Shown here piece by piece: positions 1,860 to 42,625 of a DNA stretch of 64,000 nt (its first letter is position 1; each line of letters starts with the position of its first letter). This DNA comes from Oopsacas minuta (Eukaryota; Animalia; Porifera): the NCBI GenBank assembly GCA_024704765.1, contig JAKMXF010000177.1, positions 1-64,000 of the forward strand, in the 5' to 3' direction. The position numbers and the translations under genes are program-made. The notes under the pieces are model-generated. The model worked only from the letters and a program-made list of their open reading frames with translations, searched no databases and was not told the DNA's origin.

Positions 1860-1860
1860 A

Positions 1861-9569: not shown

Positions 9570-11897
9570 TATTACCCTGTGTATTTCCTGACTCTAAAAT
9601 CGCAACAAAGTTCCACTGTGTTAGAACTAAATCCGAGGCATTCATTGGTGATTTTTTATGCCCTCACTCTATAGAAGTGGTCACTAATGAATTGAATATT
9701 ACAAATAACATATTTTACTCAACTTATACCGACTCCTCTAACAAAAGAAATCTAACGCATTATCCTCTTGCTGTACATTACTTTTCAAAATCATTTGGGG
9801 CTAAAAATCGAGTTATTGACTTTTATATCTGCTCTGAAGAAACTTCAGATTCTATTTCTAGTAATATACTTACAAGATTTAAACATAATCAAATGAATAT
9901 ACAGTATTTAGTAAGTTATAGCGCTGATAATGCAGCAGTAAATTATGGAAAATATAATTCGGTTTTTACTTATCTTAGACAACTGTGCCCAAAGCATATT
10001 TCTTCTAACTGTAACTGCCATGTTATACATAATAGCCCACGTTTTAGATGTAAGGTTTATCCTGTGATATAGAGTTGCTCGTAATAAAAATATTCAATGA
10101 GTTTCCATATCAGCAAAAAGGGTGAAGGAGCTCAAGCCTTGCTTCGTGTATCTACAAATTTAATACAAAGAGTTATTACACCATGTCCTAACAAGATGCC
10201 TTAGCCTTCTACCCGTTTTAGACCGCTGAATATTATCATAGCCAGCTATATAGGTCTACTTTTACAACTTGGCGAGGATCAATGTCCAACATTTATTTGG
10301 GACTTCATTAAATATCAAGAACATGGGTTAAATGAAGAGGATGAACTATCCATGAATGAATGTTTTCTATATTTCGTGCATAGTTTTATGAATGTTTCCA
10401 AGAATCTATTAAGAAACCTGAAGATAGCACTACTCAATCACCTGAGGTATACAACATAATGTGTAGGTTGAGATCTAATCTGAAAGATAGACTTCGAGAT
10501 GGTTTTTATTGGTTCAAAGTTAATCAGTGTTCACCTAAACTTCAAGCACGAGAGCAAGTTAGGTTTAAAGATGAAGCTAATCGTGTATTCCAAAGGATTA
10601 TTTCATACCTTGACAAGTGGTTTGATTACGAAGGGAGCATTTATAAACACATCCAAATATTGAATTTAAACAGGGAAGAAATTACTTTTGATGAGCTCAC
10701 TAAAATTGCTTCTCACTTCCAAATCAAGATCAATGGGGATGATATGTATAATGAATTTTGTTGGCTAAGAGAATGGAGAGTAAAACAAAGAGAAAATGTC
10801 TTACCGTCGATGAGCAGTGGGTAGATTTTTTTCCTATGCAAATAGTCCAAATATATTAAGTTTGGTTGAATTTGCTCAAGCATTACCAGTGAGCAATGCG
10901 TATGTTGAAAGAATTTTTAGCCTAATGAAAAATCTTTGGACTGATGAAAGGAATCGATTAAGTACAGAAATGGTAAAAGCAGAACTTTGTGTCGATTGTA
11001 CTATTCTTTATCATGCAAAGACTTCTATAATTTTATTAGACAAGAGAATCGGTTGTTGAAAACCGCCAATCAAGTGATAAGTATTTTTCTAAATGATATA
11101 CAATCAATATATAGTATTTGCGACTCCCATAGCACAGTGGTTTAAAATGGGAGTTAGTAAAGAATAGGTATTCTAGTACCAGATAGCCATATGCAATGTA
11201 TTATTTGCGAATAGGTTATGGTATCCGAGGAATCGAATGGGGTAATCAAATTTCTTCTATGGCTTCTAGATTTCTGGATATGACGCCATCACATATCATG
11301 ATGAGGTCACATTTAAAAAATTATTTAATAAAACTCATAGAAATTTCCACTTCATAAGAAAAATCTCCTATTCTGCATATATACTATTACCCTGTATAGT
11401 ATTTGGATAAGAGTGTATAGATTTAACATTTTAATGAATCTATGAATTAATTATAAGTGAATCAACAATTTCGTCTATGGAAGAATCTAGTAATCTATTT
11501 TCGGTATTATCCCTACAACACTTTGCTCTTTTTGTGTGGCCATGTTCCCCACACCTTTCACAAACTAAACTTGAACGAAATTGATTCAATACAGGGTCAC
11601 TTTCAGAGGCCAGTCTCACGAAAATGTCCATTGCATTATCTTCAAATGAAGACTTCCTTGCAAGATTCTCCCTATACTTTCTTAGTAACTTGTTGCATGC
11701 CTCGGATCCCTCTTCAGAGAAACTTCTCAGACCTCGCCCAAGGTTGAACTCTTTCAAAATTTCTTCTGAGTGAGCTAATACCCTGTGTAATGTTGGGGTA
11801 ATGCTCACCCAAGGTAATGAATCAACGATCAAGAGATATGTATTGGTGCATAGATCACCAAAGACCTCGGTGTTAATGATCCTGTCTGAATTGATTA

Positions 11898-14618
11898 CAC
11901 TGCTCAACAATTTTTTTTTCATTTTTTGTTGCATGAGATTTTTCAATTGATTCTATATAATTTTGGGATGCTGATTTCAAATCTGCAATCAGTTTCTTTC
12001 TGCATGCTCTAGTTTTCATGCAATCGACAATTTAAATTTTTTCGTTTGTGGTACTTATTTAGTACATAAATCTGATCTCCACCAAATACTTTTATCTATC
12101 AAGCCATTTTTCTTAGATTGTAGCTGTTACTATGATTTAGTAATGGCTTCAATCTATTGAAAACAAAAGCACCACTCTATTGTTCTCTGAAAACATGACA
12201 CTATTAGCGAAGTGTCAAAATTTAAATAAATCAAAAATCATCATGTTGATTTTTTTGAAATGATTTAATTCAAACAACCCTAAGTGATTGTAGTGAAGTA
12301 TCGTGGATAGATGCAGCAGAATAGGCATTTAAGCTGTATTTTTCCGCTCGTCTGCTGGTAGCCTTAATTAGAACCAAGGTTTTGTTATTCAGTTTGTTTG
12401 TGTTAAGTTACATAGAAATCAACAGACTTTCTTTCGATTCTTAACTCTTCAGATTTGATCATGGCTTCTTCTAGTAGACATAAATGCAAAAATAACCCTG
12501 ATTCATTTTGTTACATCTGTGGTGTGTATACGCTTTCGCGTCAAAGACGAAATATAACATCGTTTGTGAAGCGTGCCTACATAGCATACTTTGGTATCCC
12601 TCTTGGTGATCAAGATAAGAAATGGTCTCCTCATATTGTGTGCCATAACTGCGAAGAAATGCTCCGAGACTAGACAAAAGGAAAGCGGAAGGGTCTGCCT
12701 TTTGCCATTCCAATGGTGTGGCGTGAACCCCAAGACCACATGACTGACTGCTACTTTTGCATGGTCAATACAAAAGGTGTTGGCAAGAAGAGCCGACAAA
12801 CGCTTTCTTATCCTAGTATACCATCAGCTATGCGACCTGTCCCGCACTCTGATAGACTTCCTCCTCCGGTCTTTAGTGGTTTTGCTTTTCCTGATGATGG
12901 AGAAACTAAATTGGAAAGGGAAGAGATCGTAGAAATGGAATATCAAAAAACAGACACAGAATCAGAATCTGAAGATTCTTCTCGTGAAACCAGAGTAACT
13001 GTCCAGCAGTTTAATCAATCAGAACTGAATGACTTAGTACGTGATTTAGATCTGCCCAAGCAAGCAGCTGAGCTCTTAGCCTCCAGGCTCAAAGAAAAAC
13101 AGGTGCTGGGTCAATCTGTAAAGGTTTCCTTTTTTCGAAAAAGAGAAGAACTCCTTCTACCCTATTTTTCAGTGGAAAATAAGCTGGTATATTGCAACGA
13201 TATTCCTGGTCTTCTCGGACAACTGGGTATCTCCTCATATGATCCAGGAGAATGGCGATTGTTTTTGGACAGTTCCAAGCGCAGCCTCAAGTGTGTTCTT
13301 TTACACAATGGAAATGTTTATGGAGCTGTTCCAGTTGGTCACTCCACTGTCTTGAAGGAACAGCATGATGACATTAGAATTGTTATGGATTTACTCGGAT
13401 ATCATGATCACAACTGGATCATTTGTGTTGACCTCAAAATGGTTAGTTTTCTGCTAGGTCAGCAAAAAGGATACACTAAATTTCCATGCTATCTGTGCAT
13501 GTGGGACAGCAGAGCACGTGAAAAACATTGGATACAGAAGGAGTGGCCCTTACGTGAAACATTTCAAGCTGGCATGCCTAACGTAACACACGACCCGATC
13601 GTAAGCAGAGACAAAATTGTTTTTCCACCCCTGCACATCAAGCTAGGTCTGATGAAACAGTTCGTTAAAGCCCTAAATCCTGACAATGAATCCTTTCATC
13701 ATCTTGTGTATACTTTCCCTGCTTTGTCATATGATAAAATCAAAGCAGGAGTGTTTGATGGACCACAGATACGTACACTTATTCGCGACAAAAACTTCAT
13801 TCAGAAAATGAATGTCAGGGAGAAAGCTGAATGGCTATCTTTTGTGGATGTTATACAGAACTTTCTTGGTAACAGAAAAGCTCCAAACTATGAAATGCTT
13901 GTATCCAAGATGCTCTCAGGGTTTCGTGATTTGGGATGCAACATGAGCATAAAAGTACATTTTCTGTACAGCCACCTGGACAAATTCCCTGAAAACCTTG
14001 GGGCTGTCAGTGACGAACAGGGAGAGCGTTTCCACCAGGATCTTATGACAGTGGAAGAACGTTACCAAGGTCGATGGGATCGACATATGATGGCAGACTA
14101 TTGTTGGGGCATTAAACGTGACTGTCCTCACAAAGCGTACAAACGCAGAAGTTATAACAGGAAATTTTGTCCAGATTTGTAGAATATTTGAATCTTTTGC
14201 ATCTTGTCATTGATCGCTTTAAGTTACTATTGTAGATTGCCATCGTTCTTTTCTACGTTATTTTGCAAAAAAAATCAATTTTTACATGCATATTACCAGC
14301 AAAACTGTTGTTTTTTACATTTTTTAAAACATTTGTTGCCCATCTGTCTACAAATACAATTTCCATTGGCAACATAAAAGTTTTTTGGCACCTATTTTTG
14401 TTTTGAGGCTAGTTATTCAACTGCAAGCAGAACATCATTTGACATATCATGTCACTTTTTCAAAAAATATGAATTTTGTGCAAAAAAATTAAAAATCTCG
14501 ATTTGCAAAAAATCTAGAGCTTGCGGAAACAAACTAAGGTCGGATTCGGATTCAGCGCCCCAATATTAGGTAAAAACAAGTGTTGGTAGAAATGCAACAA
14601 AATTTTTGTTGAGCAGTG
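11898..14618 (+). mobile_element. Chapaev3-type (CMC group) DNA transposon nested in the RAG1-like ORF
   Basis: TIR CACTGCTCAACAA at both ends and 3-bp TSD TTA (11895-97, 14619-21). Confidence 0.9.
12461..14182 (+). pseudogene. Chapaev3-type transposase with a single premature stop (TAG at 12671-73, probably from TGG)
   Basis: CKNNPDSFCYICG..FG..LGDQDKKWSPHIVC..MVWREPQDHMTDCYFC..FLDSS..VDLK..CYLC..LHIKLG..HFLYSH..SDEQGERFHQ. Family assignment is from recall of Chapaev3 transposases. Confidence 0.8.
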
Positions 14619-17268
14619 TTATTCGAAGAATAGCTGACAAGTGTGTTTGTAGTTTTGAAAGTGTTTCTTTGTGTTCTGTTTCAACAACTGACAATACACA
14701 CTCAAAGTATTTCGAATCACAGGAAAATGCTCGACGAGCTACACTACCAGTAGAGCTAGTACCTCCACTTGCATTCGGCTGATCTATCCTCATTCCTGTC
14801 TTCCCTTCAATCAGATTTCTGACAAATATCATTGAATTTTTTATCGTCAAAGATGTTGGTGACCATGTACGTTTTCCACAATTCAAATGATAAATTAGTA
14901 GATTGAACCACCTGAAAATGCCAGTGTACGAGTGTAACGGAGATGCTGGAAGGATGTTTATTGTTGAGGTTGGTTCGTGTGTTATGTTACAACGTTGGTT
15001 TGAAGGAAGTGAGAAGAACGAATGGCTGTCTTCTATTTCACCGAAAAGTTGAATTGCATCAGTAATGTACCTGTTGATAGGAAATCCCTGTATTATCAAC
15101 TCACGATCATTGAGTTCCTTATGTGTTGCTGTACATAATTGACAACTTGCCCCACCTGCCCCAGATAGAATTCCTGCCATTTTCCCATCAAGCATTGATC
15201 GAACAATGTCGACTCGTACTTGCTGATCAGGGCCAAGAGTAAATCCTTCACTTCTCATAAGATCAGTATCAGTATTGATTAGATCGTCCATAAATCGCTT
15301 GATATTAGCTTCGTTTTCTTTCGCAGCGAGGAGGAAAATCGGACGTTGAGCAAAAGGAGAATTGGGAGTGTTATTTTTCCAGAGTTCGCGACCGCTATTG
15401 CTTATTACCTTTACAGCTCTGATACAGAATAAGATAAACGACTTAGTATCTGTATTCGTGTTTGATTGATTATATACAGTGTGACTGCCAGAGCCATCTA
15501 GTCCGTCTGCTATCTGGAATTGCAGGGGAAAATCTTGACTGGAAGTGGCGGTAGCGTGGACATAAGCCTGCAAAAAGTATGGCGGATGTGATGGGCATAT
15601 GGCATATATACACCAAGTGGAGTTTCAGGATTGGGGTACATCTGAATATCCGACCGTAAAATTATGCTGTTTGTTTCTTCTACTATCCTATAGTATGCCG
15701 GGAAACGAATATCGCTAGATAGCAAGTGGTATCGGAGTTGTGTGTATTTCCTCCTGCCAATTTCCAGGAGATCTAGAAGGAACACTGTCTTGGTAACATC
15801 GAGCTCTTTCTTCAACAATTTACCGAATTGACCCGAAAACTTGTCATAGACTACAGATTTTGAAACTTTAGCTATTTCTCGCTGTTTTGTTTGGTTCGAT
15901 AGTAGTTGCAAGGCAAGTGCAGCTATCTTGATTTCTGAAGTATTCTCAACGATTGAGAGTGCTTTGATAGATTCCAAGACATTTGAGAGTCGTGAGCGTT
16001 GTTGTTGCATCGTGAGATTGTCAATACTCTTCCTATGGTTTGCAGAGAGTGTGGATATGACTTCTTCATCATCTGAAGACAGCTCAACGGTATCATAAAA
16101 ACGGTTCCTCTTCAACTCTGGTTCCATGGATATACCACAATGCCACCAGTCTCCCTCTAAGCAATCTAGCGATTTCTTTGCCTTCCTGATCCTGCTTCTT
16201 ACTCGGAGGAGCGTTGCTTCCAATTGTTTCCTTTCTTCGAAGTCAATTTGAAAGTTCTGCTCAAAGAAACTGAGTGTCGTCGAGATACAGTTATTGTTGT
16301 CTTTCAAAATCTTCGCAAATTCAAGATGAGAGTTAGGGAAAGTTAGTTCTTGAGTCATTGATAAAGCGTAGAAAACGGTTGATTATCAGCAAATTCAATT
16401 TGTTAATGTCATATTAATCATGTATTTATATATTACATTTATTGGTAATTGAAATGCTGCAATCGAGTAGATAAATTTAGCATATAAATTGCATAGCAAC
16501 AAAAAGGTGACAATGGAATTCGCTGAAATTTTTCATGTTGCGCACTGTTTCGGGGCGCATCATTTTAATATGTCTTTCTAGATATTATAATGCCATTTTG
16601 GAATTAATTTCTAAGTGGTGTTTTGTGGTGTTTTTTTTTGCGGTCATTTGGAAGTTCTTTTTTTAAAATTATTGTACCTCTAAAGTAGCATTAATCAAAT
16701 CAACTTTGAATCCAAATTAGTAAAGATACATTGACAAAAATGAGAAATCAGATTTAGCATAACTGAATTGTGTCGACTAAATAAAATAAATTTGATTCGG
16801 AGAATTCTGCGACGCTCTCAAGTAAACTTAAATTGGTGCTAATATTAGCATCACTGAAACCGCAAATAGAACTATTTTTGATTGATTCTTTAAATTCATA
16901 TTGTGAGAGCTATATGTATTCGATCGAATTGAAATTTGAAACTAACATTATTCAAACAAACAAGAACGAGTTTAAACCATTAAAAATGAAATCTATTTTT
17001 TGTCTATTCTTTGGATTCAAACTACTGTGCATAGTTAGCAATCATGTGTTTTAATTGATCTGAAATATGCGCTGAAACCTGCATAATCCGATACAGGTTG
17101 GGACATGAAAATATGTGGGATTAGTAAAAAGATTATTCGGTGAAATTTCAATGTAAAAATCTTATCCCTAAAATATTGTGTCGAATAGGAAGCAAATCTG
17201 GTTAATATTGGAGACAAGAATTATGTCCGGGCTTGGTCTTATAAAGATCTGGCAACCCTAGTTGGAAA

Positions 17269-18642: not shown

Positions 18643-20079
18643 TATTATATGGAAAATATCCAATTTTATGGCATAATCAAACATTTAAAATGTCAGTTAT
18701 TTGCACTTAAGGCTTAATAATAACTTATATTATAATATCTAAAACAATTGATGCCTTTGTAAATCGCTAAATCTACAAACGTTTACTTAATACTGCGTTA
18801 TTATACAATTTTGATTCTCCCATATTTATCAAAACTTAATTTCGGTCGTATAGTGCATAACTGGGCCAAAATTCATAATCAGTCACGAGGCCTTATGTAT
18901 AGGAGGCTATGATATTACCGCATTTCCTGAATATGCGCCACATTGTTTTCTGGCAATTTTTGTATAATTCTATATACAATTTTGAAAATACAAATGATTT
19001 AGAGATAGTAATTACCTTTGACAAATATGCCCAAATTGTCGTCAAAACACTCTTATTTAGGTATATCTTTGTGACAATTTCATCCCTCCACCGTTATTTA
19101 AGCCTTGACACTTATTATAGGAAATATTTTATTTATATTAGACATACATATCATAGAATTATTGAGATTTCTGAGATTCGATTCCCTAACAGATTCATCC
19201 AGATTCTCTGAGGTTCGACCACTTAGCAAATGCTATGAGCAACCATACGGAATTCAAAAATGCAAAGAATATGCTTCGTATCAATTTTTAAGACGCTACG
19301 CCATATTGCTAATAAATTGCGGAAACACTGTGCTGCCCCCTTAAGGACATGGTGACCCAAATGTTCTGGTTTTGGAGGACGTTCTTCTTTTTAGATTAAT
19401 TGTCTTATTTCTTTGTTGTATGGGAGAGAGGATTGCCCATACCCTCCCTTTTGAAACTGTGTTGTAATTACATTCTGATAGTTCTCTCATGAATTTGTGA
19501 TTTAATGAATTATTGTGAAAAATTATTCCGCATATTTAACCATTGACCTGGAAGGTGGCGATTCTTCTCAAGTTTGATTTAGATATCGGAATTCTGTTTG
19601 ATTTAATATTACTGCTCACTAGATAGTGCGTCAATGTAATTGACATAGAAATCTAGATATCTATTAATTCAGAAACATGAGTAACAAGTTTCGTAGTTAA
19701 TTTAGGTATCTTTCTTCTCAAATATACCTATTATTCAGTAGTGGCGGACCTAAGCCACCAACATACTTTGATCTTCGAAACTTAGGTTAACGGTGATGTA
19801 TCCACTAAAATAGTCACTGAAGGCGTTAAGGTATCTACTGATGGAACATTATACTCCAAGCCTGCGTGGCAAGTATAATTGTCATTGTGAGATGAACTAT
19901 CATTTACATCTTTTGGCCATAGTCCAGTTCAGAGGTTTCACATTAATTGGAACTGGTCAAAACTAGAAGTATATCATTGAAATAAATAATGGGAAAAACA
20001 GTAAATACAAATCAGAAATTTTATGGTCAAGATCAATGAAGTAAGAAACAACCAAACAATGTGATGCGTTACAATAATT

Positions 20080-20331: not shown

Positions 20332-22421
20332 CTAAAACAGTGAAAAAATTAAAGACTTTTCACACAGTGGTTGCAATTTTTATGGAACAAAGTCCAAAAC
20401 GTACTGAGGACAAGATTCCGTTCATATGTGCTGTTAACGCCGGGTACCATAGTAACCAACTGAGTTAGAAGCAGGACCTAAAAATACTGATAACACAAAC
20501 ATTTTTGAATGTACTGTTTGATGAATTATACAATAATATCTTAAATCATAATCTGCACGGACATAAGTTTCACCAAATGAATATAAGTGTATTGAAACAA
20601 TACAATTTAAATTAATATCCATTTTAGAAGAGAAATATAGATTTTGAATATACAAATAATCGAATTATAGGTTTTAGAGTGTCAGAATGGAATTGTACCT
20701 CAATGATTGAGCTAAATAGACGATGCAAGCAATCTCAAGGCCAAACATTGGAATGTCCACGAAAAGGTATGGAAATATGAATATATGCAAGCCATCCCAC
20801 CAAAATACAATCTCCGAGAAAACAAAAATGAATATATATATGTACATGATAGCATACATGCAACCGCGTAGACAGGATTATTCATTAGGGTCTTGAGCGA
20901 GCGAAGCGACCAAATGGGGGTCTGAGGACATTGCGCCAGCGACTATAATATACAGTAGAGTCTCCAAAAATGGACACTTCGAAAAGTGGACAACACCATG
21001 CAACACAAACCTCGTGGCAGGGATTGAATTTGCCAAGCATGAAATTCATACTTAAACCGCTCCGAGGAGCAGATAATTCTCTACAACGGCCAGAATCCAT
21101 GTTCCCAACATGTCTGTTATTCGGGGACTTCCCTGTAATCATAAAAGTTTAGCGCATATCGTGTGGTTTGGGACACTTTATTGTATTGATCACTAACCAC
21201 TTATTCTGCAAAGAAAAATCTCAATTCTTCCTTCTGTGCCTATGTAAAGTTCACGAAATATATAACAATGGATAATTCAACTATTATATTCTACTATGGA
21301 AACATTAGCGTGAATTGGGAATTTGAAACTGCAAAATCAAATTCTAATTTACTTACTTAGTTTGTTGAGTTTAGCAACTAGTGGAGCTTCTATATTGACT
21401 TCATGTGACAATTATAGTAGTCTCAAGCTTATGAACAAAAGCCATGAGCTATTAAACCAATTTCGATTTCTGTCCCGCCATCAGAGGTTAGTAGATCAAA
21501 TGGGACATGAGAATACCCAAGATCCTTTGTATCACCAATGGAAATAACTAAACAAGGTTGGGACTCTCAAAAATGCAACACACTCTGGCAGAGCTCGATA
21601 CATTTAAACCCTCCATATGATTCCAGGAAAACGACATTCCATAAAAAGAAAGCGCAGGCAAAGATCCAATATTTCCAATTCTTCTGCTCAACGTCAAATT
21701 TCTAAAGACCTTGGATAGCATGTTTCAGAGAACAAAAACTGAAGCTCTGAATTATCATTGGAACATAGCAGACTTTGCAGAATATAAGAACAAAATAATG
21801 TTCAAAACTTTTAAGTATAAATTGTATCTCGTGAGAATATGTCAGAGACATTTAACCGTATGGAAAGAGCGTGCATTCGAAGACATTCTTGTTTTGGCCC
21901 GGATTTAAGAATGAGAGGACAAAAATTGTATTTCCACAAATGGTGATAAAGATTGCTGCAAACTGGTATCAAAAACTCATTCTTTATGGTCACTTTAATC
22001 GAATAGGGAGTACTTAAATAAAAGGCAACCATTGTGGGGATGTCAACAAGATGGAGCACCGGTAAATACAGCTATTCCCACACAAGATTCAAAAGGGACT
22101 AAATTAACAAATTGTATAGGAAAAATTATTGACTGCGACACAGCCCTGGTTCAAAACCCTTGTGATCTTAACCCAGAGGCAAAATAGAAGCAACTGTGAT
22201 CAATTAACAGGTGAATTGGTAGTGCTTTTAAACAGCACGACCAGGGAAAAGCAAAAATCTATGAAAATCTCCATGAAATTTTGAAAAATATATTCAAGGG
22301 AAATCTTAGCCAATTCTGGAGCTAGTCTAGAAACTTCTGTATAGAAACTTCTGCATATAACACATATGATAATTATTCATTAGAAATATTAAATTGTTAA
22401 TAGAAATGATCTAACAATATA

Positions 22422-23761
22422 CAGGGTGTCCAGAAATTATGGATACCATGAATTTCTATTTTATTTGACCATATTTTGATTTATGTTGTTTCCTAAGTAT
22501 ATATAATGATATTTCATTTATGTTCATTACCGATTCAATCTTTTCGCAATTTTGAATTTCAAAAATCAAAAATTTAGTGAAATTCTATATAATTTATTTA
22601 ACCACAATTTCCTATCTTTATTAGCGTCATTATCATGAATATTGAGATTCGTTCACGTGCTATTGATGTGATAGAAGGCGACATGACACAGAAAGATGTA
22701 GCTAATCGTCTTAGTAAGGAATTGCCACTATTAAAAGGTGGTGGAAACGCCATATCAATAACCAGAGTCTCCATCATAGACCCGGTACAGGAAGGCCGCC
22801 AAAATTGAATCCAGTGGCAAAGATGATAATATCAAAGTCTTTGGGAAAAAGACATCATCCCATAAGGAGATTGAGTGCATAATTGAAATCTAAAGGACAT
22901 TCTATTTCGAAAAGTACTGTACACTGTTATTTGAAGAAGTCTGTTGACGCTAAACCCTTCAAAAGGACCAAACAACCGAAATTGACACCAAAAAAAAGGA
23001 AAACAGACTTTTGTTCTGCCAAAAATATCGAAATTGGTCAGTGGAAGATTGGAAATGCATTCTTTGGAGTGATGAGTCTCCATTTAAACTTTTTCATCTT
23101 TTAAACCATCAAAATGACCGAATTTGGGCAAAGAGTTCAGCAAATATACCCCCACAGCAAACAGTAAAATTTCCTCAAAGAGACATGGTGTGGGGCATGA
23201 TGAGCTATCAAGCGGTCTCTGAACTGCACATAATACCTCCTAAACAAAATATAAATGCCGCCTATTATATGGATGAGATATTGGCCAAAACCTGTAAAGA
23301 TGCAATTAAACGCAAAAGAAAGACAGGGAATATCTTTCAGAAGAGAATGCTTCCAGACCCGTTGAAATCGATATTCATGCAAGATGATGCTCCATCTCAC
23401 AGGGCCAAAATTTCGCAAGAATGGTGTTATAAACACTTACATAATTTCTGGCAGAAAGAAGTGTGGCCAGGTAATTCGCCAGACCTGAACCCCATTGAAA
23501 ATCTTTGGGCAATACTCAAGCAGAAGCTTGAGGAGGCACCCCAGCCGAACAACCTTCAAGACCTCATATTTTCTTCTGAAAAATGCTGGTCAAACTTAGA
23601 TTCTTCGCTCCTCGAAAATTTAATAGTAGGCATGCCGAAGAGAATTGCAAAATGTATAGAATTATAAAGAGATTATATAGATAAATGAAATGAATACATG
23701 GTGGTAGTTTTCGAAACTTATAGCAACTTATGAAAGGTATCAATAATTACTGGACACCCTG
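22422..23761 (+). mobile_element. Tc1-like transposon with both TIRs and a frameshifted transposase
   Basis: TA|CAGGGTGTCCAG..CTGGACACCCTG|TA. Motifs WSDES, MQDDAPSH and DLNPIENLW. Confidence 0.93.
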
Positions 23762-27729: not shown

Positions 27730-30700
27730 CACAGTGGCCAATTCTTGCGAATTACTAGTATTAGGGTTTTACGCGTTCAATTTTAGAGATAGGCTTATAA
27801 AATACATTATTACTGTATAGTAAGTCGACTATTGCGGTTCTTTAGTTGATTTCAATTTTGTTGTATCACATCAGATTTTCAATATATGACGTAATCGTAA
27901 TTACCATATACAGTAATACAGACATCTAGATATCCACTAAACTGAGTTTTTATTAGAAGAAATAGAATATGAATATATAATGGCTATGGTAACTGAAGAA
28001 TAACTAACATACGAATATCTTATTGATGAATTAATATTAAATGCAAGAAGAGTTCATCTATGGAATTTTGAAGGAGAGAATCTTCATTATCAATATTATT
28101 TGTAACGTTTTCACCTTGCCTGTTTTTACACAATTCTTTTGATGGCCTACTTGACCACAGGTGGAACAAATGATGATCCTTCTGAATTTTTCATTCAGAA
28201 TTGGACAACCATAGATGTAGAGCCTCATTGCAACATCACTTAACCCACTTAGAAAATCTGATTTCCTGCTCAAATGTGTTGAAAACTCTCGGGTCAACTT
28301 ATGTCCTTGTTCTAACTCTTCTTCAGAAAGACTACACAATCCTACCCTGTCATTTCTCTCAATAAACTGATGGGCATGAGCCAAGAATTTGTGGAGTGTA
28401 TTACTGACACCCAGGGAAAGGTTTGTAAGATTAGCATGTAGGTTTCTTGACTTAACAGACGAAATCTGTCTACATCGACAACTTCATCACTATTAGCAAC
28501 TCTGAGTAATGCAGATAGATTCCTATGAATCTCTGTCAGAGCATCTCTATACACATTTGGTACAAACGATAAAGCGATCCTAAAACACGGTTTTTATATA
28601 TGAAAAAAATGTTCTTGCCATGTTACCAGTGCTTGTGTTCCCACTTCCTCCTGGTTGGTCGAATAATAAGTTCATAAGCTCATGGATACGCTTGCATACT
28701 AAACCTCGATAATCTCGCACCATTTGATCTTCAGTCCACTTGGACTTTCCTGCTGCAATTCGGTAGATGAGGTTCAAAAACTAATCTAAAATCCTTAGTA
28801 AGAATGTAAAGGTGCTGCAGGAAATACATCAATGCCACTTGCAGGTTCGTGTGTAATCCCACACCGCTGCTTTGTATTGTAGCTCATCAGCTCTTTTCCA
28901 TCAGAGGTTAATTGACGGATTGTCTCTTTGATATCCTCTATCGAACAATCTAATGGAAACCCGCAAACCACTTTCGTAATGCTATTGATATCACTTAGGG
29001 TTGCTTTGTAGGCAATACATGACGCTCCTCCTTTACCTGTCATTGTTGCTAAGGTTTTTCCGTCAAACATTGAAGCTTTGACTTCTACTTTAACATGGCC
29101 ATTTAGGTGATCAAAACCATTCTCATTTAGTGAAACAATTTCAGGGTTTAGTAACTTGCTCAATTCTATCACAGTGTCAATAGTCTCCTTTTGGCAAGTA
29201 AGTGCTACTGGTTGGTTGGAAAAACAGGAGTTAGGATGCCTATTTTCCCACAGAACATTCCCGAATCGATCTATTACCTGAAGGGGTGAAACCATAAAGA
29301 CAATATAATTTGATCGGTCTATATTCAAGTCTGACAATAACCCAGGAGAGGAATGAGATCCAGAACCATCCAATCCATGCTTGATTTTGAGTGTTAATGA
29401 ATAGAAGTGTGGTGCAGGAAAATTTAGCAAACATTCTTTTAACAACCGGTCAAAGAGAGAAATTACATGTGATGAGTAAGATATATAGACCCCTATAGGA
29501 TTGGAAACATTTGGATACCAGTCGAATGTTGGAACAATTGATTTTCTAATTTCACTAATTTTTCCCAAGTTGCCAAAACGAGGCCTTCTGATTGGAGATA
29601 ATATTTAAGATCTCTCCATTTTCCTTTTCCCAGCTTAAGTTGATATGCTAAGAATGTTGATTTTTCTGGTGAAACCATGTTACTGAGGGTTGGTATCGAT
29701 TCTTCGTTATAGATTTTCCAAGCGATATTTGCGATGCCTTTAAAACCAATTTGTTCTACAGCTACAATATACAGGAGGAGAGCAACGTAGCGAATGACAG
29801 AAATATTTCCAAGTTGTGCTAACTGACGGATGGAATTAAGTATCCCAGTCTGATCAAGCCTTATCTTCTTTGAACGAACTTGAATGTCATCAATTGATTT
29901 TCTCCTCTCTACATTTGGAACCAATATAGCACCGCTTTCTACATCACAGCCTGAAACAGAAAGGGATGATTGGGTACTCTTAGGTTTAACAAGGATCCAT
30001 GGAATACTTGCACTCCACCACTCACCATCTAAGCTCTCAATAGATTTCTTACTCTTTCTGAAATTATATGATATACTTTAGACATTAGAGAGTATACAGA
30101 ATGTCTCTTGTCTTCTTCGAGATTTAGTATACGCACCACTTCATCTGTTGCTTGATTGATATAATAGTCGTGAACCTTTAATATGATAGCCAAGTCAAGA
30201 CGTGTTTTCGGGCTTTCAGATACTATTGTTGCTTCAGCCATCTTTATATTGATAATTAGAGGTTTAATAGGTTATCAAATTAATGAACTTGTATACTACC
30301 TCGTAATATGCAGTATATATAAATAATTATTACGTTATATTGGTGTAAAATTACCATGTAATTACATTACATTGTACCATAGTAACGTAGAAGTGAGAAT
30401 GGAATTTGACAATATTTAATATGTTGCGCAATGAAGCGGCATTTGTACTTTAAATATAATGTTTATATTACTTGACAAGAATACATACTAAAAATTCAGG
30501 GTGGAAACTAGTGGAAACAAATTTTGCTGCCAACAGGATGGCTTATGGCCGAGAGAAATTTCTACAAAATTTTCACAGTATTGTATACGTAATATCTGAT
30601 TAATCTTTTCGCTCCTGAAGAAATTCAACGATAGATTCAAATTCAGCGCAGTCACTTTGCTTGGAAAGCATGTAAATGAACAATAGTATGCATCATAAAT

Positions 30701-30920
30701 TCAACAGATTACTGAAATAGCTTCAGGCATTCATATAATGGATGTATAAACATAGAATACAGCAATGAAGTCCTACATTTGATTGACCACAAAAATAGAA
30801 ATACTTAACTGTTTCATCTGATACTTTACATATCGCTTGTTGAATATATCTAGAGTCTAATTCAAAATTCAAAATGGTATAAATTGAAGGTAAGAATTTG
30901 GGCCTAATGTACCCTAGTAG
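27730..30920 (-). mobile_element. RAG1-like transposon B; decayed ORF about 30241-28058, 5' terminus truncated at the junction with C
   Basis: 3' terminus CACAGTGGCC at 27730. Motifs KHGLDGSGSH, SMFDGK, APLHSY, NTSTGNMARTFF, SEEELEQGHK..LSRK and CSTCGQVGHQKNC. Confidence 0.88.
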
Positions 30921-33916
30921 CACAGTGGCACGGCATGTGGGAATAGGTGAAAAAAATATAACCTCAAATTGCTTTATAGTGTTGATACTTGAATTCAGCA
31001 CCCCCACAAACCTCGGAAAACATTTGACATCTCTACAATAGACTTTCCATTTAGCTCCTACGTCTATTCCAATGAGAGCATAATTGAAATTCGAAAGATT
31101 GATTTATGGTTTCAATTTTCGGTCATGATGTAATTTTGAATAATATGGATTCTCCACGTCAAATAACTGCTATTTATAGTATACCAATCGAAAGCTCTTA
31201 TGTTGCTGAATAATAAATCACGTTAATCTTGGCTCCAATGAACAGATGAAATTTACTATCCTCATTTTAAACAAGCTTGTTCGTACAAGTGCAATAAATA
31301 GAAACACGTTTCATTAAAACTCTAGTACTTTTTGCCTTCACTTGCGGAACTTTCCATTGCACTTTCCTAATAGCTCTTTTCGTCCTCTACAAAATACACT
31401 TTAAATTATGGTGTCAGGAAGTGTCAACGATATTTTTTTTGCGATTTTAAATATAATCCATTCACAATTATCTAATTTTTGGCCCATATAAATCATAAAT
31501 AATTGTTGTGGTTGTTTATTAGCACATTTTTCATTATGAATAACGAAGATGCATACACGTTCTTAACTGCACAAAAGAATAAAACAATCACTTCTCTTGC
31601 GTCCTCGTTTATTGTCCTCAATAATTTGGAAGAAACAGAGCATGATACAGTTCGGAGAAAATTTTCGACCCTCAGAGAAGATAGGAGAGAATACCTGAAA
31701 CGAGCCGATATAACTACTTGGAATGCGATACCTTTTCATACACCACTTAAACACCCGAGATTGAGTACAGGTTATCAATGCTCAGATGAAGTCATGGTGA
31801 TAGGGAGTGTTTCTTCTAGCCAATCAACCTCTGTTTTCGAAGAAGATTTTAGTAAGCCCACCCGTAAGCCTCTAAGGGAATTATCAACTAAAGGTCTTCG
31901 CAGCCGATTGTCCTCCTTACTAACACATCTTGAAAAGGTTGCTGTACAAGAGAATGTTTCCAGTAAAGAACTATCCTGTTACCTGATGATGCTATGTTCA
32001 CATACTGAATACGACTTTACTACTACCAAGTTCTGTAAAGAAATTATTGCTAAGGGAAGCTTCGGTCCAGTCTGCAATAAATTAACCTGCGATAAAGCTG
32101 CGTTCTTGATGGATTCTTTAGAAATTGGAAAGAAGAAATACATCGATTTAAGACGATTATTGCTTTCAGATGTCCAGCTTCCAGGTTACAATCGATTAGC
32201 TACCTATCGATCTCAAATTTGCTTGACTAATGACATCTTTTCAGTTGATCGAGAACATCGGGTAGGCATTGCTGTATCTTACAAAAAGCTTCTGACTCAT
32301 ACAGTAAACAGAATATTGACTGCTTCTGCCAATGAAATTCCCAGCGCCAGCAATCCTAAAAGGATACGAATTTCAGATGGACTTGACGGTTCTGGCTGTC
32401 ACCAGGTTTATCAGCAAGCGACTCACCCCAATATATCAACAAAAAGTTTTATTTTATTCGGGTTTAAGGTGATTTCCATATCCGACACCGATAACAAACT
32501 GATTTGGAAAAACCCTCTACCAAATTCTCCTTTCTCAATTAGACCCGTTGCGATACTAGCTCTACAGGAGAACGAAGACAATATTCGATATCTTATGGAT
32601 ACACTAATCAATAAGGAGTCCACAGAGATAACGGAAAAGGGTTTAGAACTAACAAGCGGATTTTGTGAAGTTGAAATTCAACGTTTACAATTGGATGGCA
32701 AAATGGCTAAGATTATTAGTGGAGCTGGGGGTGCATGTTGCCAGTTCTGCACAGCGACATTCAAACAAATCCATGATCCGGATATCGTAAAAGACGGTTT
32801 TCCAATTAATCGATCCATCACAGACCTGAAAGTATTATTTGATAAAGTTAACGAAGAGGAGTTTCTATCACTATCTTCTGACAACAGATTCAACGTTACA
32901 CACAGACCAATATCTGACTTAGAAATCATACCCAGTTCGCCTTTGCATGCATATCTCCGATGTTTTGGCTGGTTTTACATCTAATTAGCCATTTGCACGC
33001 AGGAGTATTTAAGTGGTCACCAACTTCTAAGAGAGTCTCAGATGCTAAAACTTTCGTTACAAGTTTAATTAAAGACAATCTCAATATTATTATTGACATC
33101 CCTTCAACACAAGGTAGCACAACGACTACTGGTAATGTGGTAAGACGATGCTTGATAAGAAAGGATGACAACGATCAAGATTTCCTCTACTGGGTTTTGA
33201 CAGTGATCCCGTCTGAGTTCAAGTCCCACATAATTGAAATTCACACATGCCTAGGAGCAATCCTACGCGTCTATAATAGCAGCAGAAGAGTGGATACAGA
33301 AGAACTAGCGCTTGTTTGCAGTAATATCTACCAGTCAATTCTCTGTGCATTTCCTTGGGCTAATGTTTCCCCGACGTTACACAAACTGTTAGCACATGCA
33401 CCGGAAATCATCTCAACGTTTAATGATGGACATGGGCTAGAGAAGTTATCTGAAGAAGGACTAGAGGCTTCTAACAAATATATTCGGAGATACAGAGATC
33501 GTCTTGCTCGCAAGTTTTCATTTGAAGAAAATTTAAAGGATGTATTTGTTCGATTGGTTTCTCACAGTGATCCCATGCTGTTAATGAATCGCAAGTTTTC
33601 TATTCCAAGGCCTCCATCTAGCCAAGGACTTAGAAGTAGCCAAGATATTTTAGTGAACACCCTTATTCGTGATCATGAAGATCATAATGATGATTAAAAG
33701 TAAACCTCTCAATCGATTAATAGAAAATTTGGGGAATTTTCACACCTCAGATAGGTGACAATGACGTCATAACTTTGTCACCTGAAGGGATAGAGAAAAA
33801 ATGAGTATCCCATTCGATTCGTTGGGCTCGAAAACCTATATGACAATAATATATTTGAGGACCTATGTGCCATCAAAATGCCTATTTCCACATTCTGACC
33901 ATTTCGTGCCATTGTG
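30921..33916 (+). mobile_element. RAG1-like transposon C with both TIRs but no matching TSD
   Basis: CACAGTGGCACG at 30921 and CACAATGGCACG (reverse complement) at 33916. Flanks AGTAG and TATTT differ. Confidence 0.92.
31536..33697 (+). pseudogene. RAG1-like transposase C (about 720 aa), broken only by one 1-nt frameshift in a T-run near 32975
   Basis: RKPLRELSTKGLRSRL (NBD-like), DGLDGSG, LQLDGK..CCQFC, SPLHAYLRCFGW|LHLISHL, TTTGNVVRR, LHKLLAH and SEEGLEASNKYIRRYRDRLARK. Confidence 0.9.
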
Positions 33917-35700: not shown

Positions 35701-35964
35701 ATATCACTAAAATAGATATTAACAAACTTACATACGTTCTAAAAATGATCACGGAACTTCGGTTTGTAAATGATTTTGCAAAAATTTATTTGGACTTAAA
35801 TTTTATACTATATTACACATGTTGGCAACTTCTTATCGTTGGTACAATTTAAGAAAAATGTCCATCTAGATCTAATCGTATTGTTTCTATACATATCGCT
35901 AAACCAAAAGAAATATTTGCATTTAGAAGAATGCTGTTCGCTTTACCACGACTATAATTTGTAG

Positions 35965-36495: not shown

Positions 36496-37620
36496 CTAGG
36501 GCGTTCAATAAGTCTTGCAGGTGTTATCATAAAAATATGATACAAGCACTATATAAACTAATTCACTATATTATTTATTCAAAGTAATCCCCTCCTGCAG
36601 ATACACAAAGTTTTAACCTTTCCACCCACTTGTAAAACACATTTCTGTACTCTTCTTCGGGGATGGATTTGAAGTACTGGTACAGGCCAGTTCTGAGTGC
36701 CTGTAATGTGTTAAAATCTTTGCCTTGAAGGTAGATTTTAAGCTTGGGAAATAGCCAAATATCACACGGAGCTAGGTCTGGTGAGTATGGTGGATGGGGA
36801 AGTAATTCCAACCCTTCTACATCCAAGAAATCTTTGCTAAGTTTAGCTGAATGGGAACTGGCGTTATCAATTAAAATCTTCATTCCTCGAATTCCGGTTT
36901 TCGGGCGGTACTTTTCTATATTTTTTATCAAATTTGGAAGCACTTGCTCTGTAAAGAAAGTAGCAGTAACAGCCTTGCAACTCTCACAAGGTAATTGCAA
37001 GACAACTCCATGACTACTGAAGAAGATGGTACACATAATCTTAGATTTTCTGAAGTCGGGCCTAGGAATTTCCGCTGGTTGTTCGTCGCTCCTCAAACAT
37101 GTTCGCTTCTCATACTTGCTATATGGTTTTGAATAGTACACCCACGTCTCGTCACCAGTAATAATCTCTGTTAGGCGTAGAGAATCGCAGTTCTCATAAG
37201 TTTCAAAGAGTTTCTTGGCAATATTCAGTCGTGCCAACCTTTGATTCTCACTGAGCTTATGCGGGACCCATTTCCCACAAATCGATTGGTAGCCAAGCTC
37301 AGTCGTCAGAATTGTATGAATAGCTCCCGATAAAATCTCCATGCTTTGTTCAAACTGATTGACAGTAATGCACTTGTCTTCCATGACCATACTTTCAATG
37401 AGTGCGATATTCTCTGAAGTGGTGGCGGATACGGTCTTCCAGATCTTGGCTAATCTGTGACATCAGCATCACCAGACCTACACGGACAGTCCATCGCTCT
37501 ACAGTAGATCTGGAAGGAAATCCACGTACAATATCTCTTGTGACTCGCTGGAGATCTGTACGGCCTGGATCTTGAGTATTGTGCTAAACTCTATGTAAGC
37601 TCGCCATTTGAGCACGTTGG
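36496..37620 (-). mobile_element. Mariner (DD34D) element, 5' end disrupted
   Basis: ORF 36575-37390 with ITGDETW, IDNASSH and HPPYSPDLAPCDIWLF. TA|CTAGGGCGTTCAATAAG terminus at 36496. Confidence 0.9.
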
Positions 37621-37729
37621 ATGGCAAAAGCTATCTAAGCGTGGAAAATAGAGCTACTCTTTCGGGGAAACGAGGAAGCACTGCATCTCGCCGGAAAGCA
37701 ATTACAAGGTCTTCAACGATTCAACCGAT

Positions 37730-38290
37730 TTGTTATCCTTGTATACATCCAGTCGTGGTACTCGTGCAACCTCGCTGTTGATGCTGCATTCAACGATAGA
37801 GCGCTAATTCATCGTTTACAGGAATACAACGACGTGGAACTGAGTCGTGTCGGTTTGCGGATGATGGTCATACACTCTTGGCACCTTTCTCCGGAGTTGG
37901 CTCCGCTAGCGCTATTCTCAAACCATGTGCATGACGAGATCAAAGTTCAGCTTGTTGCAGGTATGCAGCAAGATCAAAGCAGACATCTGTTAACTAAGCT
38001 ACCGGGCTCTCTTAATGAACTTGATGCATCGCTGTCATTTTTTGAGATATCAAGATTAGACTCATCATTCCTAAAAATCTCTCAATACTTGGAGCTCCGA
38101 TCTAAGCTACATAGTGGGTTAACGATTTGCTAGGCATTTGGCCTATGTAAACAATGTTGCTGAACGTGGGATCCAGCTGATTGAACAGTTCAACAGAAGT
38201 TCAAAAGACGAGGTCCAAAAGCAATGCCTACTACAAGTGGTAGAGCAGCATGGAAACACTTCAGGACTACTCCAACTATGTCTGAGCTAA
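37730..38290 (+). pseudogene. C-terminal remnant of a hAT-related (hATm-like) transposase
   Basis: HSWHLSPELAPLALF and VNNVAERGIQLIEQF..DEVQKQCLLQVVEQH. Subfamily name is from recall. Confidence 0.5.
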
Positions 38291-38314
38291 ATTTCATTTA
38301 ATCTATCAATAATA

Positions 38315-41300
38315 CAGTCTGTCACTTGAAATTGGGAAAGTCTTTTTCAATGTTAGAATGTTCCTAATTGCATTTTCAAATTGGTTATCGTAATAATATT
38401 GATAGTTTGTGTTTTTCAACTATTTCTAGTCATTTCTTAACCAATTGAACTTCTTTAGCTGACTGCGCACAGTGTGGTAAAAAGGCGAAAATGAGGGATT
38501 AGCCAAATTGTAACTTCAAATCGATAATATTTGTATTATACTTATATATGAAATCGACCCCGTACATTTCACTGGACAAGTCAAATTTTTAATTAACCCA
38601 CTCAAAATATGTGAGGATGACGTCATCACTAAAATCACTAATTCATAATTTTAATAGATTATCAGGGATTCATAAAGGGTATCCTGTTCAGATGTTTCAA
38701 GCATGCTATCTTCGTTTGATTTAGCCTTTCTAATACTTTTGTGACGATTTAAAACCAATACAGGGTCACTGAAGCACAAAAGTCTGACTAAAATATCACG
38801 CAAGTTGTCAGAAAAGGAAGTTTTTCTTGCTAGATTTTCTCTATACCTTCTGACATACTTATTGCAAGCCTCTAAACACTCTTCAGAAAGGTTTTGCAGT
38901 CCATAACCATGATTATAGCAATAAATTATTTGAAAACAATGAGCAAGCAGTTTATGAAGAGAGGGAGAGATGCTTACCCAAGGAAAGTGATTCAAAACAA
39001 TTCCATACGTTTCCTTGCAAAGATTTTCAAGACCATGACAATTAATGTGGTCTTTGCTGTTAACTATCCTCAAAATCACCGAGAGGTTGTTTTGAATCAT
39101 TTTAAGGGTTGGTTTATCAACTGGGTTAATAGTGGAGGTAGCGCATCTGAAGAAATCTCTTTTATCTCGAAAACAGTCTCGTGCAACATTGCCAGTTGTT
39201 GAAGTCCCCCTTGACTAGAAGGAATATCGATTTTGATACTACATTTGGCTTCTATAATTGATCTTATTCGTTTCAAAGAATCCTATACTTTTGTGCATGT
39301 AGGTGACCACTTTTTACAACCTGCGTCTAAGTGATATATGAGTAACATATACCACCTAAAGACACAGAGGTACGCATGCAATAGAGAAGCTGCTAAAATG
39401 TTTATTTCGGAAGTAGGGTGGTGGGTAATGCCACAGCGTTTTTGGAAGGTAGGGCAAATATTTCGTCCTCATTAATACCGTCAAATAGTTGATTAGCATC
39501 AGTAATGTATCTATTAATTGGAAAACCTGATCTGGCCCACTCTAAACTATTGATTTCCTTTCCTGTGGCCGTGCAAAGATGACATGATGCACCACCCGCT
39601 TCATCTAATAGACCTGCCATTTTGGTATCAAATATAGATCGAATAATTTCTACTTTTATGTGACGATTTTCAATTGCAATTTCTTGTTCTACAATTAATT
39701 TAGTTGCGGGATTTATGAGTGTATCCATAATAAATTTAAGGTTTTCGTGATTTTCCTTCAACGCAATTAAGCAGACTGCTCTGAATGAAAAAGGTGAATT
39801 GAGGGAAGTATTGACGTATAATGAGAAACCTGTGTTATCTGTTATACTGAGAACTTTAAATCCGAATAGAATAATACTGTGTGTACCTAAACCTGGATTT
39901 GAGTTCACTTGGTTGTAAGAATTGTGTGAGCCTGATCCATCTAGACCGTCTGCAATTCGAACTGACAAAGGATATTGTGAGTTGTTTACAATGGAATCGA
40001 AGCTTAAAAGATGTCGCTGAATTGTTAGTTCGAGTATTTCGAAATAAGGAACTGATACACCAATAGAGTTACCTTCGGGATTAGTGACAAATAAAACGCT
40101 TCGTGAAAGAGAAATTTCTTGACGGTATTGCGATATTACTTTATAGGATGGAAATACGATATCTTGTTTCAGTAATTTCTTCAACTGTGTGATTTGAATG
40201 CTCCAATTTCGAGAAGATCAATTATATAACTTGACATAGGTATCGAAACTTTCTCTACATTTCCGTACGTGCCTGTTGCGATGATTTCTTTGCATATACT
40301 GGAAGTTTCTCGATCATATTCCTGGTTAGAAATTAATTCCAGAGCTAAAGCAGCAACTTTCTTCTCGTCAACCTGCTCCCTTTGGGCAACGAACTGAATA
40401 TGCTTTAGCAAAACGTTCAAACGGTTTCGAGCAGCTTTCATTGTGAGTTTGAATAATGGTTTTCTGATCTCTGTTAGATTCTCTTCAATAAATGAGTGCT
40501 GCTCAGGGATAGAATCGACTGTGTCAATCGACATTAGTGATCCAGAGTTACAAGTAGTGACTGAATAAAACTCCATACCCTCCCAAACATTTAAGTTGTA
40601 AATCTTCTGGTAATGATCTCTGGATCTTCGAAGATTTCTTAATTTCCAACGAATAGTTTCAAACAGATCATCTGACAAGGAATGAACTTCAATTATCTGA
40701 CGAGCTGCACCAGAACAATTCCAACCATGTGATTTATAGATATCGTATGCTTCTTTTTGTGTAATAAATGTTTTATCCATTGAACTGGTGGAAGGAAGTA
40801 ATGTCTAGTAAGAATCAATAATGGGATAAATAACACAAGTTTGAAATTGAGCCGATCCCAGGGAAATTTGGATTGAAATTCGAAATGGGTGGGGAATGGG
40901 GCGCTAAAAATTGTATTAAATTAAGGGTAGTACAGTACTTTAACATTGTTAAAAATATAGAGGCCCCATATTGTACCCATGTAAAAATCTACCTCTGAGT
41001 ATGTCGAAATACATCCCAAAATTTGGTAATTTTCGGGGTTTCGAAAAAGAGTTCTCTCAAAAATTTCTATTAAGTTTGGGAGATATTAATCTTCAAAGTT
41101 ATGATAGTAATACTTATAAATGAATCACGAATTGAATTACTTGCAAGTAGGCATTTGATTGCATCTACTGCTAGAATTTATGATAACGTAATTATAGTTC
41201 GGAAAATGTTTTGAAACCTTATAAAATTACGTCATTAGATAATGAAAATTTAAATTCACAAATAGAAGCTGAACCACAGTAAACACAATATAGTTGTATT

Positions 41301-42625
41301 CTCGACAGACTATTGAACAATATTAGAACAATTATAGATAGTTATGAGACCACAAAAAATTTGGCTAATTCTAGATGATACCACACTGTGCTGCGGTTGC
41401 AAAATATTTCAATTTATACTTAGTTACTAATCAAATATTCTATATAAATATTTATCACTTGAATTTCTCGCAACACTCCTATTTCTTCGCTAATAATTCT
41501 TTACTTTCATCAATTCAAAACCTTAAAATGAACGAGCAAGAACAGCGTAACATTATCAAGATACTTTTCGACACAGGAATCACGAATTGTATGGAATTAT
41601 CTCGAAGAACTGGAGTTCCAAAAAGTACAGTTTATCGCACTGCTTACAAATTGAGGAATGCTGAATCCGTTGATAGAAAGATTGGTTCCGGGAAAGAGCG
41701 TCAGATCAAAGCAAATAACGCTAGATCACTTGTTAGTTTGGCAATCAACAATCCTAGGTTATCTGTGAGGAAGTTGACTTGCAAATTTAACAAAAGGCGG
41801 GGTCTATCGTTCTCACACGAGGCTGTAAGGATTGAGATGAAGCGGTATGGCTTCACCCGCAAGGTTGCTAGAAAGATTCCGATGCTTACACAAACCTATA
41901 AGGCTCATCGTGTCGATTGGGCTAAGTCTAACAGATGTAGAGATTGGGAGAAAGTGATATTTAGCGATGAGATGTCTATTTGGCTAGCTGGTGGCAGAGC
42001 ATGTGTCTGGTGTAAAGGTGATTCGAAACCAGTAAAACCCAGTACGAAACACTCTCCTAAATTGCATGTTTGGCAGCGTTTTCAGCACGTGGAACGTTTC
42101 CTATCAAGATTTTCAGAGAAAATCTCACCGGGCGACTTTACTGCGACATTCTGCACGAATGTTTAGTAGAACAAGCAAGTGTCTTGTACCCTGATGGATG
42201 GGTTTTCTAGGAAGACAACGATCCCAAACACACGTGCAACCTTGCTAAAGGATACATAGAGGTGAAAGGGATACATAAGATGGATTGGCCTACTTGTAGT
42301 CCGGATTTGAATCCGATCGAGAACCTCTGGTCGTGGATCAAGAGAGAAATCGATTTGAAGTCACCACGAAATTTAAATGAGCTGGAAAGGGAGCTAAATG
42401 AAGCATGGAATTATTTAGAAAATGAATTTTTACGTCCATTTTGGTCATCGATGCCAAAAAGAGTCAAATTAGTACGGAAAAGTAACAGAAATAAGATAAA
42501 TTATTGGGCCTACTATATTATTGATTGTTTAAGGATTCTAATAACATATTTAGAATAGAAACACACTAAATGTACTTGTAGCTAGGGAAAAACAAAGATC
42601 TTCCCAATTTCAAGTTGACAGACTG
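38315..42625 (+). mobile_element. Tc1-like transposon carrying RAG1-like element D in its 5' non-coding region; transposase about 41528-42520, frameshifted
   Basis: TA|CAGTCTGTCA(A)CTTGAAATTGGGAA at both ends. Motifs FSDEM, EDNDPKH and DLNPIENLW. Confidence 0.9.
38468..41390 (-). mobile_element. RAG1-like transposon D (2923 bp); decayed ORF about 40780-38651
   Basis: TIR CACAGTGTGGTA at both ends and 5-bp TSD CTGCG (38463-67, 41391-95). Motifs RKPLFKLTMKAARNRL, DGLDGSG, SIFDTK..CHLC, LHKLLAH and SEECLEACNKYVRRYRENLARK. Confidence 0.95.

Follow-up and report, generated by a model that had tools for sequence, protein, structure and literature searches.

Background

The 12/23 rule of V(D)J recombination has been shown biochemically, and RAG2 and HMGB1 are involved in it. 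Here we describe a 64,000-nucleotide stretch of the genome of the glass sponge Oopsacas minuta (Porifera; assembly GCA_024704765.1, contig JAKMXF010000177.1, positions 1 to 64,000; hereafter the window), in which four transposable elements related to RAG1, termed A to D, end in a heptamer like that of V(D)J recombination signal sequences (RSSs), followed by a second box at one of two fixed distances. The closest described systems are Transib transposons and the RAG-like (RAGL) transposons.

Several Transib families possess 5' termini similar to an RSS with a 12-bp spacer (RSS12) and 3' termini similar to its 23-bp counterpart (RSS23), and the 12/23 rule is derivable from the structure of Transibs (Kapitonov and Jurka 2005, PMC1131882). 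The "Transib seed" hypothesis was built on these RSS12/RSS23-like termini (Yakovenko et al. 2021, PMC8355894). Every Subgroup I Transib has asymmetric terminal inverted repeats (TIRs), a CCGHC tail and an equivalent of the nonamer-binding domain (NBD) of RAG1, while in Subgroup II symmetric and asymmetric TIRs both occur; in AanRAGL two conserved elements are separated by 4/13 spacers, an offset of 9 bp (Tao et al. 2022, PMC9435367). PflRAGL-A has an NBD, a CCGHC tail and ends that are asymmetric by 10 bp (Martin et al. 2023, PMC10629977). In HzTransib most of the NBD is missing, and its TIRs have little or no similarity to the nonamer (Carmona et al. 2016, PMC4840297). Our literature search found no paper pairing Oopsacas with Transib, and the searchable supplementary text of Tao et al. 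2022 did not mention sponges.

Results

Four elements with bipartite ends of unequal length

Read directly in the window, all seven intact ends of elements A to D consist of a heptamer (CACARTR), a spacer of 14 nt at 5' ends or 23 nt at 3' ends, and the box AWTAG. The heptamer is CACAGTG in most ends, with CACAGTA and CACAATG occurring once each, and always starts with the RSS-like CAC. The polarity of the ends was fixed by tblastn with full-length relatives, which placed the transposases of A, B and D on the minus strand and that of C on the plus strand. Coordinates and tblastn frames thus agree with the original prediction, made from the letters of the window, that seven of seven ends carry the 14/23 layout in a fixed polarity relative to the open reading frame (ORF).

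Element A (11133-17029, minus strand, 5897 bp) is flanked by CATAG as a target site duplication (TSD) of 5 bp (11128-11132 and 17030-17034). Its 5' TIR (16994-17029, minus strand) contains the heptamer CACAGTA at 17023-17029 and, after a 14-nt spacer, AATAG at 17004-17008; the 3' TIR (11133-11168, plus strand) contains the heptamer at 11133-11139, the motif AAATGG at 11145-11150 and, 23 nt after the heptamer, AATAG at 11163-11167. The transposase of A, which ends in a CCGHC zinc knuckle, is interrupted by a nested insertion, and the size of A (5.9 kb) is due solely to this 2.7-kb element at 11898-14618.

Element B (27730-30920, minus strand) is a Transib with a degenerate transposase, which has the CCGHC tail. 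Its 3' TIR is intact (heptamer 27730-27736, 23-nt spacer, ATTAG 27760-27764). At the junction with C, the 5' end of B lacks exactly the outer 9 nt (heptamer plus 2 nt), and the inner ATTAG is present at 30904-30908. In element C (30921-33916, plus strand, 2996 bp) the transposase is spread over two frames that overlap (31503-32984 and 32960-33697). The 5' end of C at 30921 (plus strand) reads CACAGTG, 14-nt spacer, AATAG (30942-30946), and the 3' end at 33916 (minus strand) reads CACAATG, 23-nt spacer, AATAG (33882-33886), with AAATGG at 33899-33904. No TSD surrounds the window copy of C (AGTAG versus TATTT) and likewise none surrounds copy L005; copy L001 has the flanks CTATC/CTATT. Together, the B/C junction and the TSD-less copies of C suggest deletion or recombination between copies, not a simple insertion.

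Element D (38468-41390, minus strand, 2923 bp; TSD CTGCG at 38463-38467 and 41391-41395) has its transposase in several pieces. The 5' end at 41390 (minus strand) consists of CACAGTG, a 14-nt spacer and ATTAG (41365-41369); at the 3' end, which starts at 38468, a 23-nt spacer precedes ATTAG (38498-38502), and AAAAGG is found at 38480-38485. Termini and TSD of D are fixed independently, because in a public contig 41391 follows immediately upon 38462, 5 letters being common to both sides; this contig represents a paralogous site without D. The flanks of D (38268-38467 and 41391-41590) belong to a high-copy repeat with a contig word depth of ~1,400-4,000 versus ~600-1,500 inside D.

By sequence comparison, A to D are identified as single-gene Transib DNA transposons, whose transposase appears homologous to the RAG1 core with its RNase H-fold DDE domain. 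Elements of this kind without a nested insertion measure 2.9-3.3 kb and have a single ORF, and the long ORFs inside C and D are transposase pieces only. No RAG2-like gene was found in the elements, as ~3-kb elements with one ORF have no room for another; the elements were rightly predicted to be RAG2-less. A RAGL transposon with RAG1L and RAG2L genes was ruled out, as there is neither a convergent kelch gene between the TIRs nor the space for one.

When both strands of the window were scanned, AWTAG at a distance of 14 or 23 nt accompanied 7 of ~60 CACARTR sites, and all seven are element termini; none of the ~53 non-terminal heptamer-like sites has AWTAG at either distance. In a histogram of AWTAG spacings behind 288 heptamer-like sites, taken from the window and ~120 kb of fetched loci, a spacing of 14 occurred 10 times and one of 23 nine times, while any other spacing occurred at most four times.

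Three other heptamer sites in the window deserve mention. The sites at 20363 (plus strand) and 22036 (minus strand) are inverted, 1.7 kb apart and have 11 of 12 letters of CACARTGGTTGC in common; they have neither a TSD that matches nor an AWTAG at a distance of 14 or 23 nt. At 19332 (minus strand), CACAGTG is followed by ATTAGC after 12 nt. All three could be decayed or non-autonomous Transib ends, or they could be due to chance.

The layout in further copies and families

A protein search retrieved LOD99_* proteins of assembly GCA_024704765.1 with an identity of 94-98%. In tblastn the identity between families was 29-65%, and between the proteins of the O. minuta families it is only ~30-55%. 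The ends of two further C copies (L001 and L005) are the same as those of C in the window. Since B is 5'-incomplete in the window and its inner ATTAG implied a 14-nt spacer, a complete copy of B provided a match to a prediction: in L012, whose 5' end lies at 5327, CACAGTG is followed by ATTAGG after exactly 14 nt. Other B copies (L010 and L011) are 5'-truncated. Family E (L004, TSD TAGAG) has AATAGG after 14 nt at the 5' end and after 23 nt at the 3' end. Its transposase ORF (L004 4001-6133) is uninterrupted, as is that of family F (L002 4001-6160). In family J (L013, TSD GGGCC) the boxes stand at the same two positions and read AATTG and AGTAG. The ends of L007 were destroyed by insertions of long terminal repeat (LTR) retrotransposons, and the 3' end of L008 was not found in the fetched locus. 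The 5-bp TSDs of A (CATAG) and D (CTGCG) are perfect, and E and J have 5-bp TSDs as well.

Bipartite ends of unequal length and fixed polarity are conserved in at least six O. minuta families. Across these six families not a single spacer indel was found, though the spacer sequences have diverged almost wholly. Families found in two further ENA assemblies have degenerate boxes that can still be recognised at positions 22 and 31, and 5-bp TSDs are again present (F: CGGAA and CACCA; G: AGGTT; I: AAGTT). The boxes read ATTAG/ATTGA in F, TTTAG/ATTGG in G and AATAGG at the single end found of H, and are ambiguous in I, so that a strict AWTAG code had to be rejected for these relatives.

The offset between the two kinds of ends was also determined in a motif-free manner, by a diagonal scan that compared the inner portions of 5' and 3' ends at all offsets. 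The best diagonal was +9 in A (10/12), C (11/12), D (12/12), E (12/12) and J (10/12), and in shuffle tests P was below 0.005 for C, D and E. AWTAG is a short motif that was defined post hoc, and its spacing might on that ground be taken for a chance pattern. This explanation is effectively refuted: the layout is found at all termini and at none of the other window sites, the histogram peaks just at 14 and 23, the predicted 5' end of B was met in an independent copy, and the shuffle tests point the same way.

Conserved blocks and a motif specific to 3' ends

Column conservation, calculated with one sequence per family, revealed two conserved blocks in the 5' ends (positions 1-8 and 20-26) and three in the 3' ends (positions 1-8, 13-18 and 28-36), and the spacers between these boxes are randomised. 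The first block is the heptamer, CACAGTG(G), and the second box has the approximate consensus G.AWTAG(G). The label "14/23" depends on the chosen start of the box; the 9-bp offset is the robust and invariant quantity.

The additional block of the 3' ends is AAATGG. In A, C, D, E, J and G this motif, or AAAAGG or AAATGC, starts at position 13, in I at position 14, and it was found in none of the 5' ends of the families compared. Outside the window, the loci with such a 3' end include L004 (E), L013 (J) and L006. The 3' ends of B and F lack it, yet keep the main box at the 23-nt position. AAATGG is similar to the AAATAGG box; it may be an extra binding site.

Of the original prediction's more detailed claims, the one on spacing held when extended to further genomic copies, as the 14/23 positions are kept in six O. 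minuta families, including the B copy L012, E and J. Two others need amendment. An A(A/T)TAG box at every intact end is correct for the seven ends in the window, while it is degenerate in J and in the families from other assemblies; and spacers said to differ strongly between families are indeed mostly diverged, except that the 3' spacers have AAATGG/AAAAGG in common at positions 13-18.

The 3'-specific motif permits a different reading of the asymmetry, in which it is functional without being a spacing rule of the 12/23 type. The 3' end would then offer two sites to the transposase (AAATGG at 13-18 and the main box at ~30) and the 5' end one, and the ends would differ in number and affinity of sites, as is the case for many transposons whose left and right ends are unlike. 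The asymmetry would set the order of assembly or cleavage and would not reflect a requirement of helical phase. The restriction of the motif to 3' ends, in seven families, fits this, and the 9 nt by which the 3' end of E is longer look similar to the 9 nt beside them. However, B and F keep the 23-nt position of the main box without the motif, and the distance of the main box is invariant in six O. minuta families, which a site-number model does not need. We therefore regard this explanation as unlikely, though worth keeping in mind.

The 9-bp difference could also be a neutral accident, e.g. a 9-bp duplication in an ancestral 3' TIR that was tolerated by a flexible DNA-binding domain and kept only by descent. 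The families form one related radiation, and the 3' insert appears partly duplicated in E and C. Against this stand the lack of spacer indels despite near-complete divergence of the spacers, the same box positions in relatives from other assemblies, and the independent RAG-family elements with offsets of 9-11 bp (PMC9435367, PMC10629977, PMC1131882). Neutral descent is hence a rather improbable explanation.

Next to the second box, on its inner side, a weak A/T-rich tract occupies positions 30-36 of the 5' ends in all families (e.g. 30950-30956 in the window). This is the position of the A-rich nonamer in the published Transib consensus. The tract may just reflect the AT-rich composition of an untranslated region. 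No A-rich, nonamer-like second box (AAAAAAATC-like) was found in the ends; the box is G.AWTAG(G).

Transposase homology, NBD-like region and CCGHC tail

In searches of the PDB, HzTransib (6pqn) was the best match for the ORFs of C and A, followed by RAG1 and BbRAGL. It was also the best PDB match of the family profile (E = 2.7e-45), and the top Foldseek match of the structural model was 6pqx (E = 8e-23, TMt 0.84). Pfam returned just a weak, sub-threshold match to RAG1 for C among the window ORFs.

When 14 full-length relatives were combined in a profile, its alignment to RAG1 began with the NBD and that to HzTransib only at profile position 168. With a profile made from just the N-terminal region (A3), the top PDB match was the NBD structure of RAG1 (3gna, E = 2.8e-5), and the next 15 matches were all RAG1 chains. 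In the AlphaFold model, whose pLDDT is 78.5, residues 117-172 of this NBD-like region form three helices, and in Foldseek ~70 more columns were aligned to RAG1 chains with the NBD than to chains without it. On these profile and model comparisons, the N-terminal region is judged homologous to the NBD of RAG1.

The CCGHC tail is present in A, B and the related proteins P0018, P0023 and P0030, and was found to be absent when looked for in C, D, E, F, G and J. The geometry of the ends is the same with the tail (A and B) or without it (C, D, E and J). As the geometry is independent of the tail, the comparison points to the NBD-like region, rather than the CCGHC tail, as the putative reader of the second box.

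Nested element N and other features of the window

The insertion in A, element N (11898-14618, plus strand), lies outside families A to D. It has a 3-bp TSD (TTA) and 13-nt termini CACTGCTCAACAA of the form CAC...GTG. The box TGTTGCAT stands 16 nt from the 5' (left) terminus and 6 nt from the 3' (right) terminus, so that the ends are offset by 10 nt, with a polarity opposite to that of the Transibs. The ORF of N (12713-14182, 489 aa) encodes a protein whose predicted fold is remotely RAG1/Transib-like: the top 42 PDB matches of its model were all HzTransib or RAG1, with modest TM-scores (Foldseek E ~1e-6, TM 0.36-0.41), and no Pfam family matched. More than 2,000 homologues with 55-70% identity were found in bats, frogs, Hydra, insects (beetles), copepods and tunicates, a host distribution that suggests horizontal spread.

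Between the Transibs, remnants of Tc1/mariner-type transposases were detected with Pfam at 23011-23667 (DDE_3) and 36575-37390 (DDE_3 and Transposase_1); transposons are nested throughout this region. At ~1929-3050 there is a tandem array whose repeat period is ~174 bp, with CACAATATATWGTGCAAATCATAGC at 1958, 2132, 2306, 2827 and 3001.

Discussion

The sponge elements have much in common with Transib5 of D. melanogaster and Transib2_AG and TransibN1-3_AG of A. gambiae: a single gene, a CAC heptamer, a 5-bp TSD, a second box, and a short 5' and a long 3' end. In RSS12/RSS23-like Transib ends as described by Kapitonov and Jurka, the distance between heptamer and second box is shorter at the 5' end, the difference from the 3' end being about one helical turn, and this is what we found, with the +9 offset in A, C, D, E and J and with box positions in B that fit it. 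By published description, the insect Transib5/Transib2_AG group has an A-rich, nonamer-like box and spacers of 12 and 23 (+/-1) bp, i.e. an 11-bp offset. The sponge elements differ from it in the box G.AWTAG(G), the 9-bp offset and the extra 3' AAATGG. The ends described here are thus an architecture already published for some Transibs, and the concept is not new. A statement in the original prediction that no description of this exact code was known is not supported, as asymmetric Transib ends (PMC1131882, PMC9435367) and similar offsets in RAGL elements (PMC9435367, PMC10629977) have been published; its view that the second box is unlike the vertebrate nonamer was borne out by G.AWTAG(G), which is not an A-tract. 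Local features of the sponge set are the 9-bp offset, the non-A-tract box and the third, 3'-specific motif.

With Subgroup I Transibs the sponge elements have in common asymmetric bipartite TIRs and an NBD equivalent. The CCGHC (CTT1) tail typical of that subgroup is found just in A, B and some relatives, and C, D, E and J are without it; the comparison is one of features. AanRAGL has the same 9-bp offset, but only AanRAGL contains a RAG2-like gene. PflRAGL-A of Ptychodera flava likewise combines a heptamer and conserved adjacent region with an asymmetric spacer and a distal box, and has the NBD and CCGHC tail as in A and B. It differs by its RAG1L/RAG2L gene pair, the motif GRPR/K and an AT-rich nonamer-like box, whereas the sponge elements have no RAG2L, RK(P) in place of GRPR/K, and a non-A-tract box. 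V(D)J RSSs resemble the sponge ends in the heptamer CACAGTG, in a second element near position 20 (short) and 29-31 (long) and in the homologous NBD of the enzyme; they are not the transposon ends of a genome-wide family, have the nonamer ACAAAAACC and an 11-bp offset; the resemblance of the sponge ends is one of sequence. Finally, HzTransib (PDB 6pqn and related entries) is the closest solved structure to the catalytic core, and the sponge proteins are ~200 residues longer at the N-terminus.

How might such ends work? The NBD-like domain would bind the second box as a dimer, as the NBD of RAG1 binds the nonamer, and owing to the offset of one helical turn the two ends would not be equivalent within the synaptic complex. 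If, as in RAG, an NBD dimer bridged the boxes despite their different register, a 5'/3' pair could be the synapse that is preferentially, or solely, productive. We consider this explanation as a whole, i.e. asymmetric bipartite Transib ends whose second box is read by the NBD and which are preferentially or solely productive as a 5'/3' pair, to be probable, with some reserve.

Several points weigh against it. Its support consists of sequence and predicted structure. The NBD-like region was modelled with moderate confidence (pLDDT 55-66) and has RK(P) where RAG1 has GRPR, so the GRPR motif is not conserved; the second box is not A/T-rich, unlike the nonamer. For B, the +9 diagonal scores no better than another offset (7/12), and the support from this family comes from the positions of ATTAG alone. 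Families from other assemblies gave a weak or ambiguous +9 register, F being best at +13 and I at 0, 3 or 10. All families are related, and the common geometry is therefore partly inheritance. The extra AAATGG permits the other reading set out above, of two binding sites versus one. In addition, RAG2 has been argued to have had a part in establishing the 12/23 rule, and RAG1 alone did not favour asymmetric substrates (Carmona et al. 2016, PMC4840297).

A more specific proposal is that a RAG2-less Transib transposase enforces the pairing of a short with a long end, via a RAG1-type NBD and a non-A-tract box 9 bp out of register, with AAATGG as a third site at the 3' end. We put this forward tentatively, as a possibility rather than an expectation.

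The results extend a published Transib pattern to Porifera and establish no new principle. They bear on the debated origin of the 12/23 rule, for which a role of RAG2 (Carmona 2016), a "Transib seed" (Yakovenko 2021) and ancestral asymmetric TIRs (Tao 2022; Martin 2023) have been put forward. At least six co-resident Transib families, some of them apparently intact, with one geometry and an NBD-like domain, and with or without the CCGHC tail, form a natural comparative series. This series bears on the reading of the distal box by the NBD, on the need for asymmetry without RAG2 and on the division of work between tail and NBD. If a pairing rule without RAG2 were true, the 12/23 principle would predate RAG2 and would be operating in transposons of early-branching animals.

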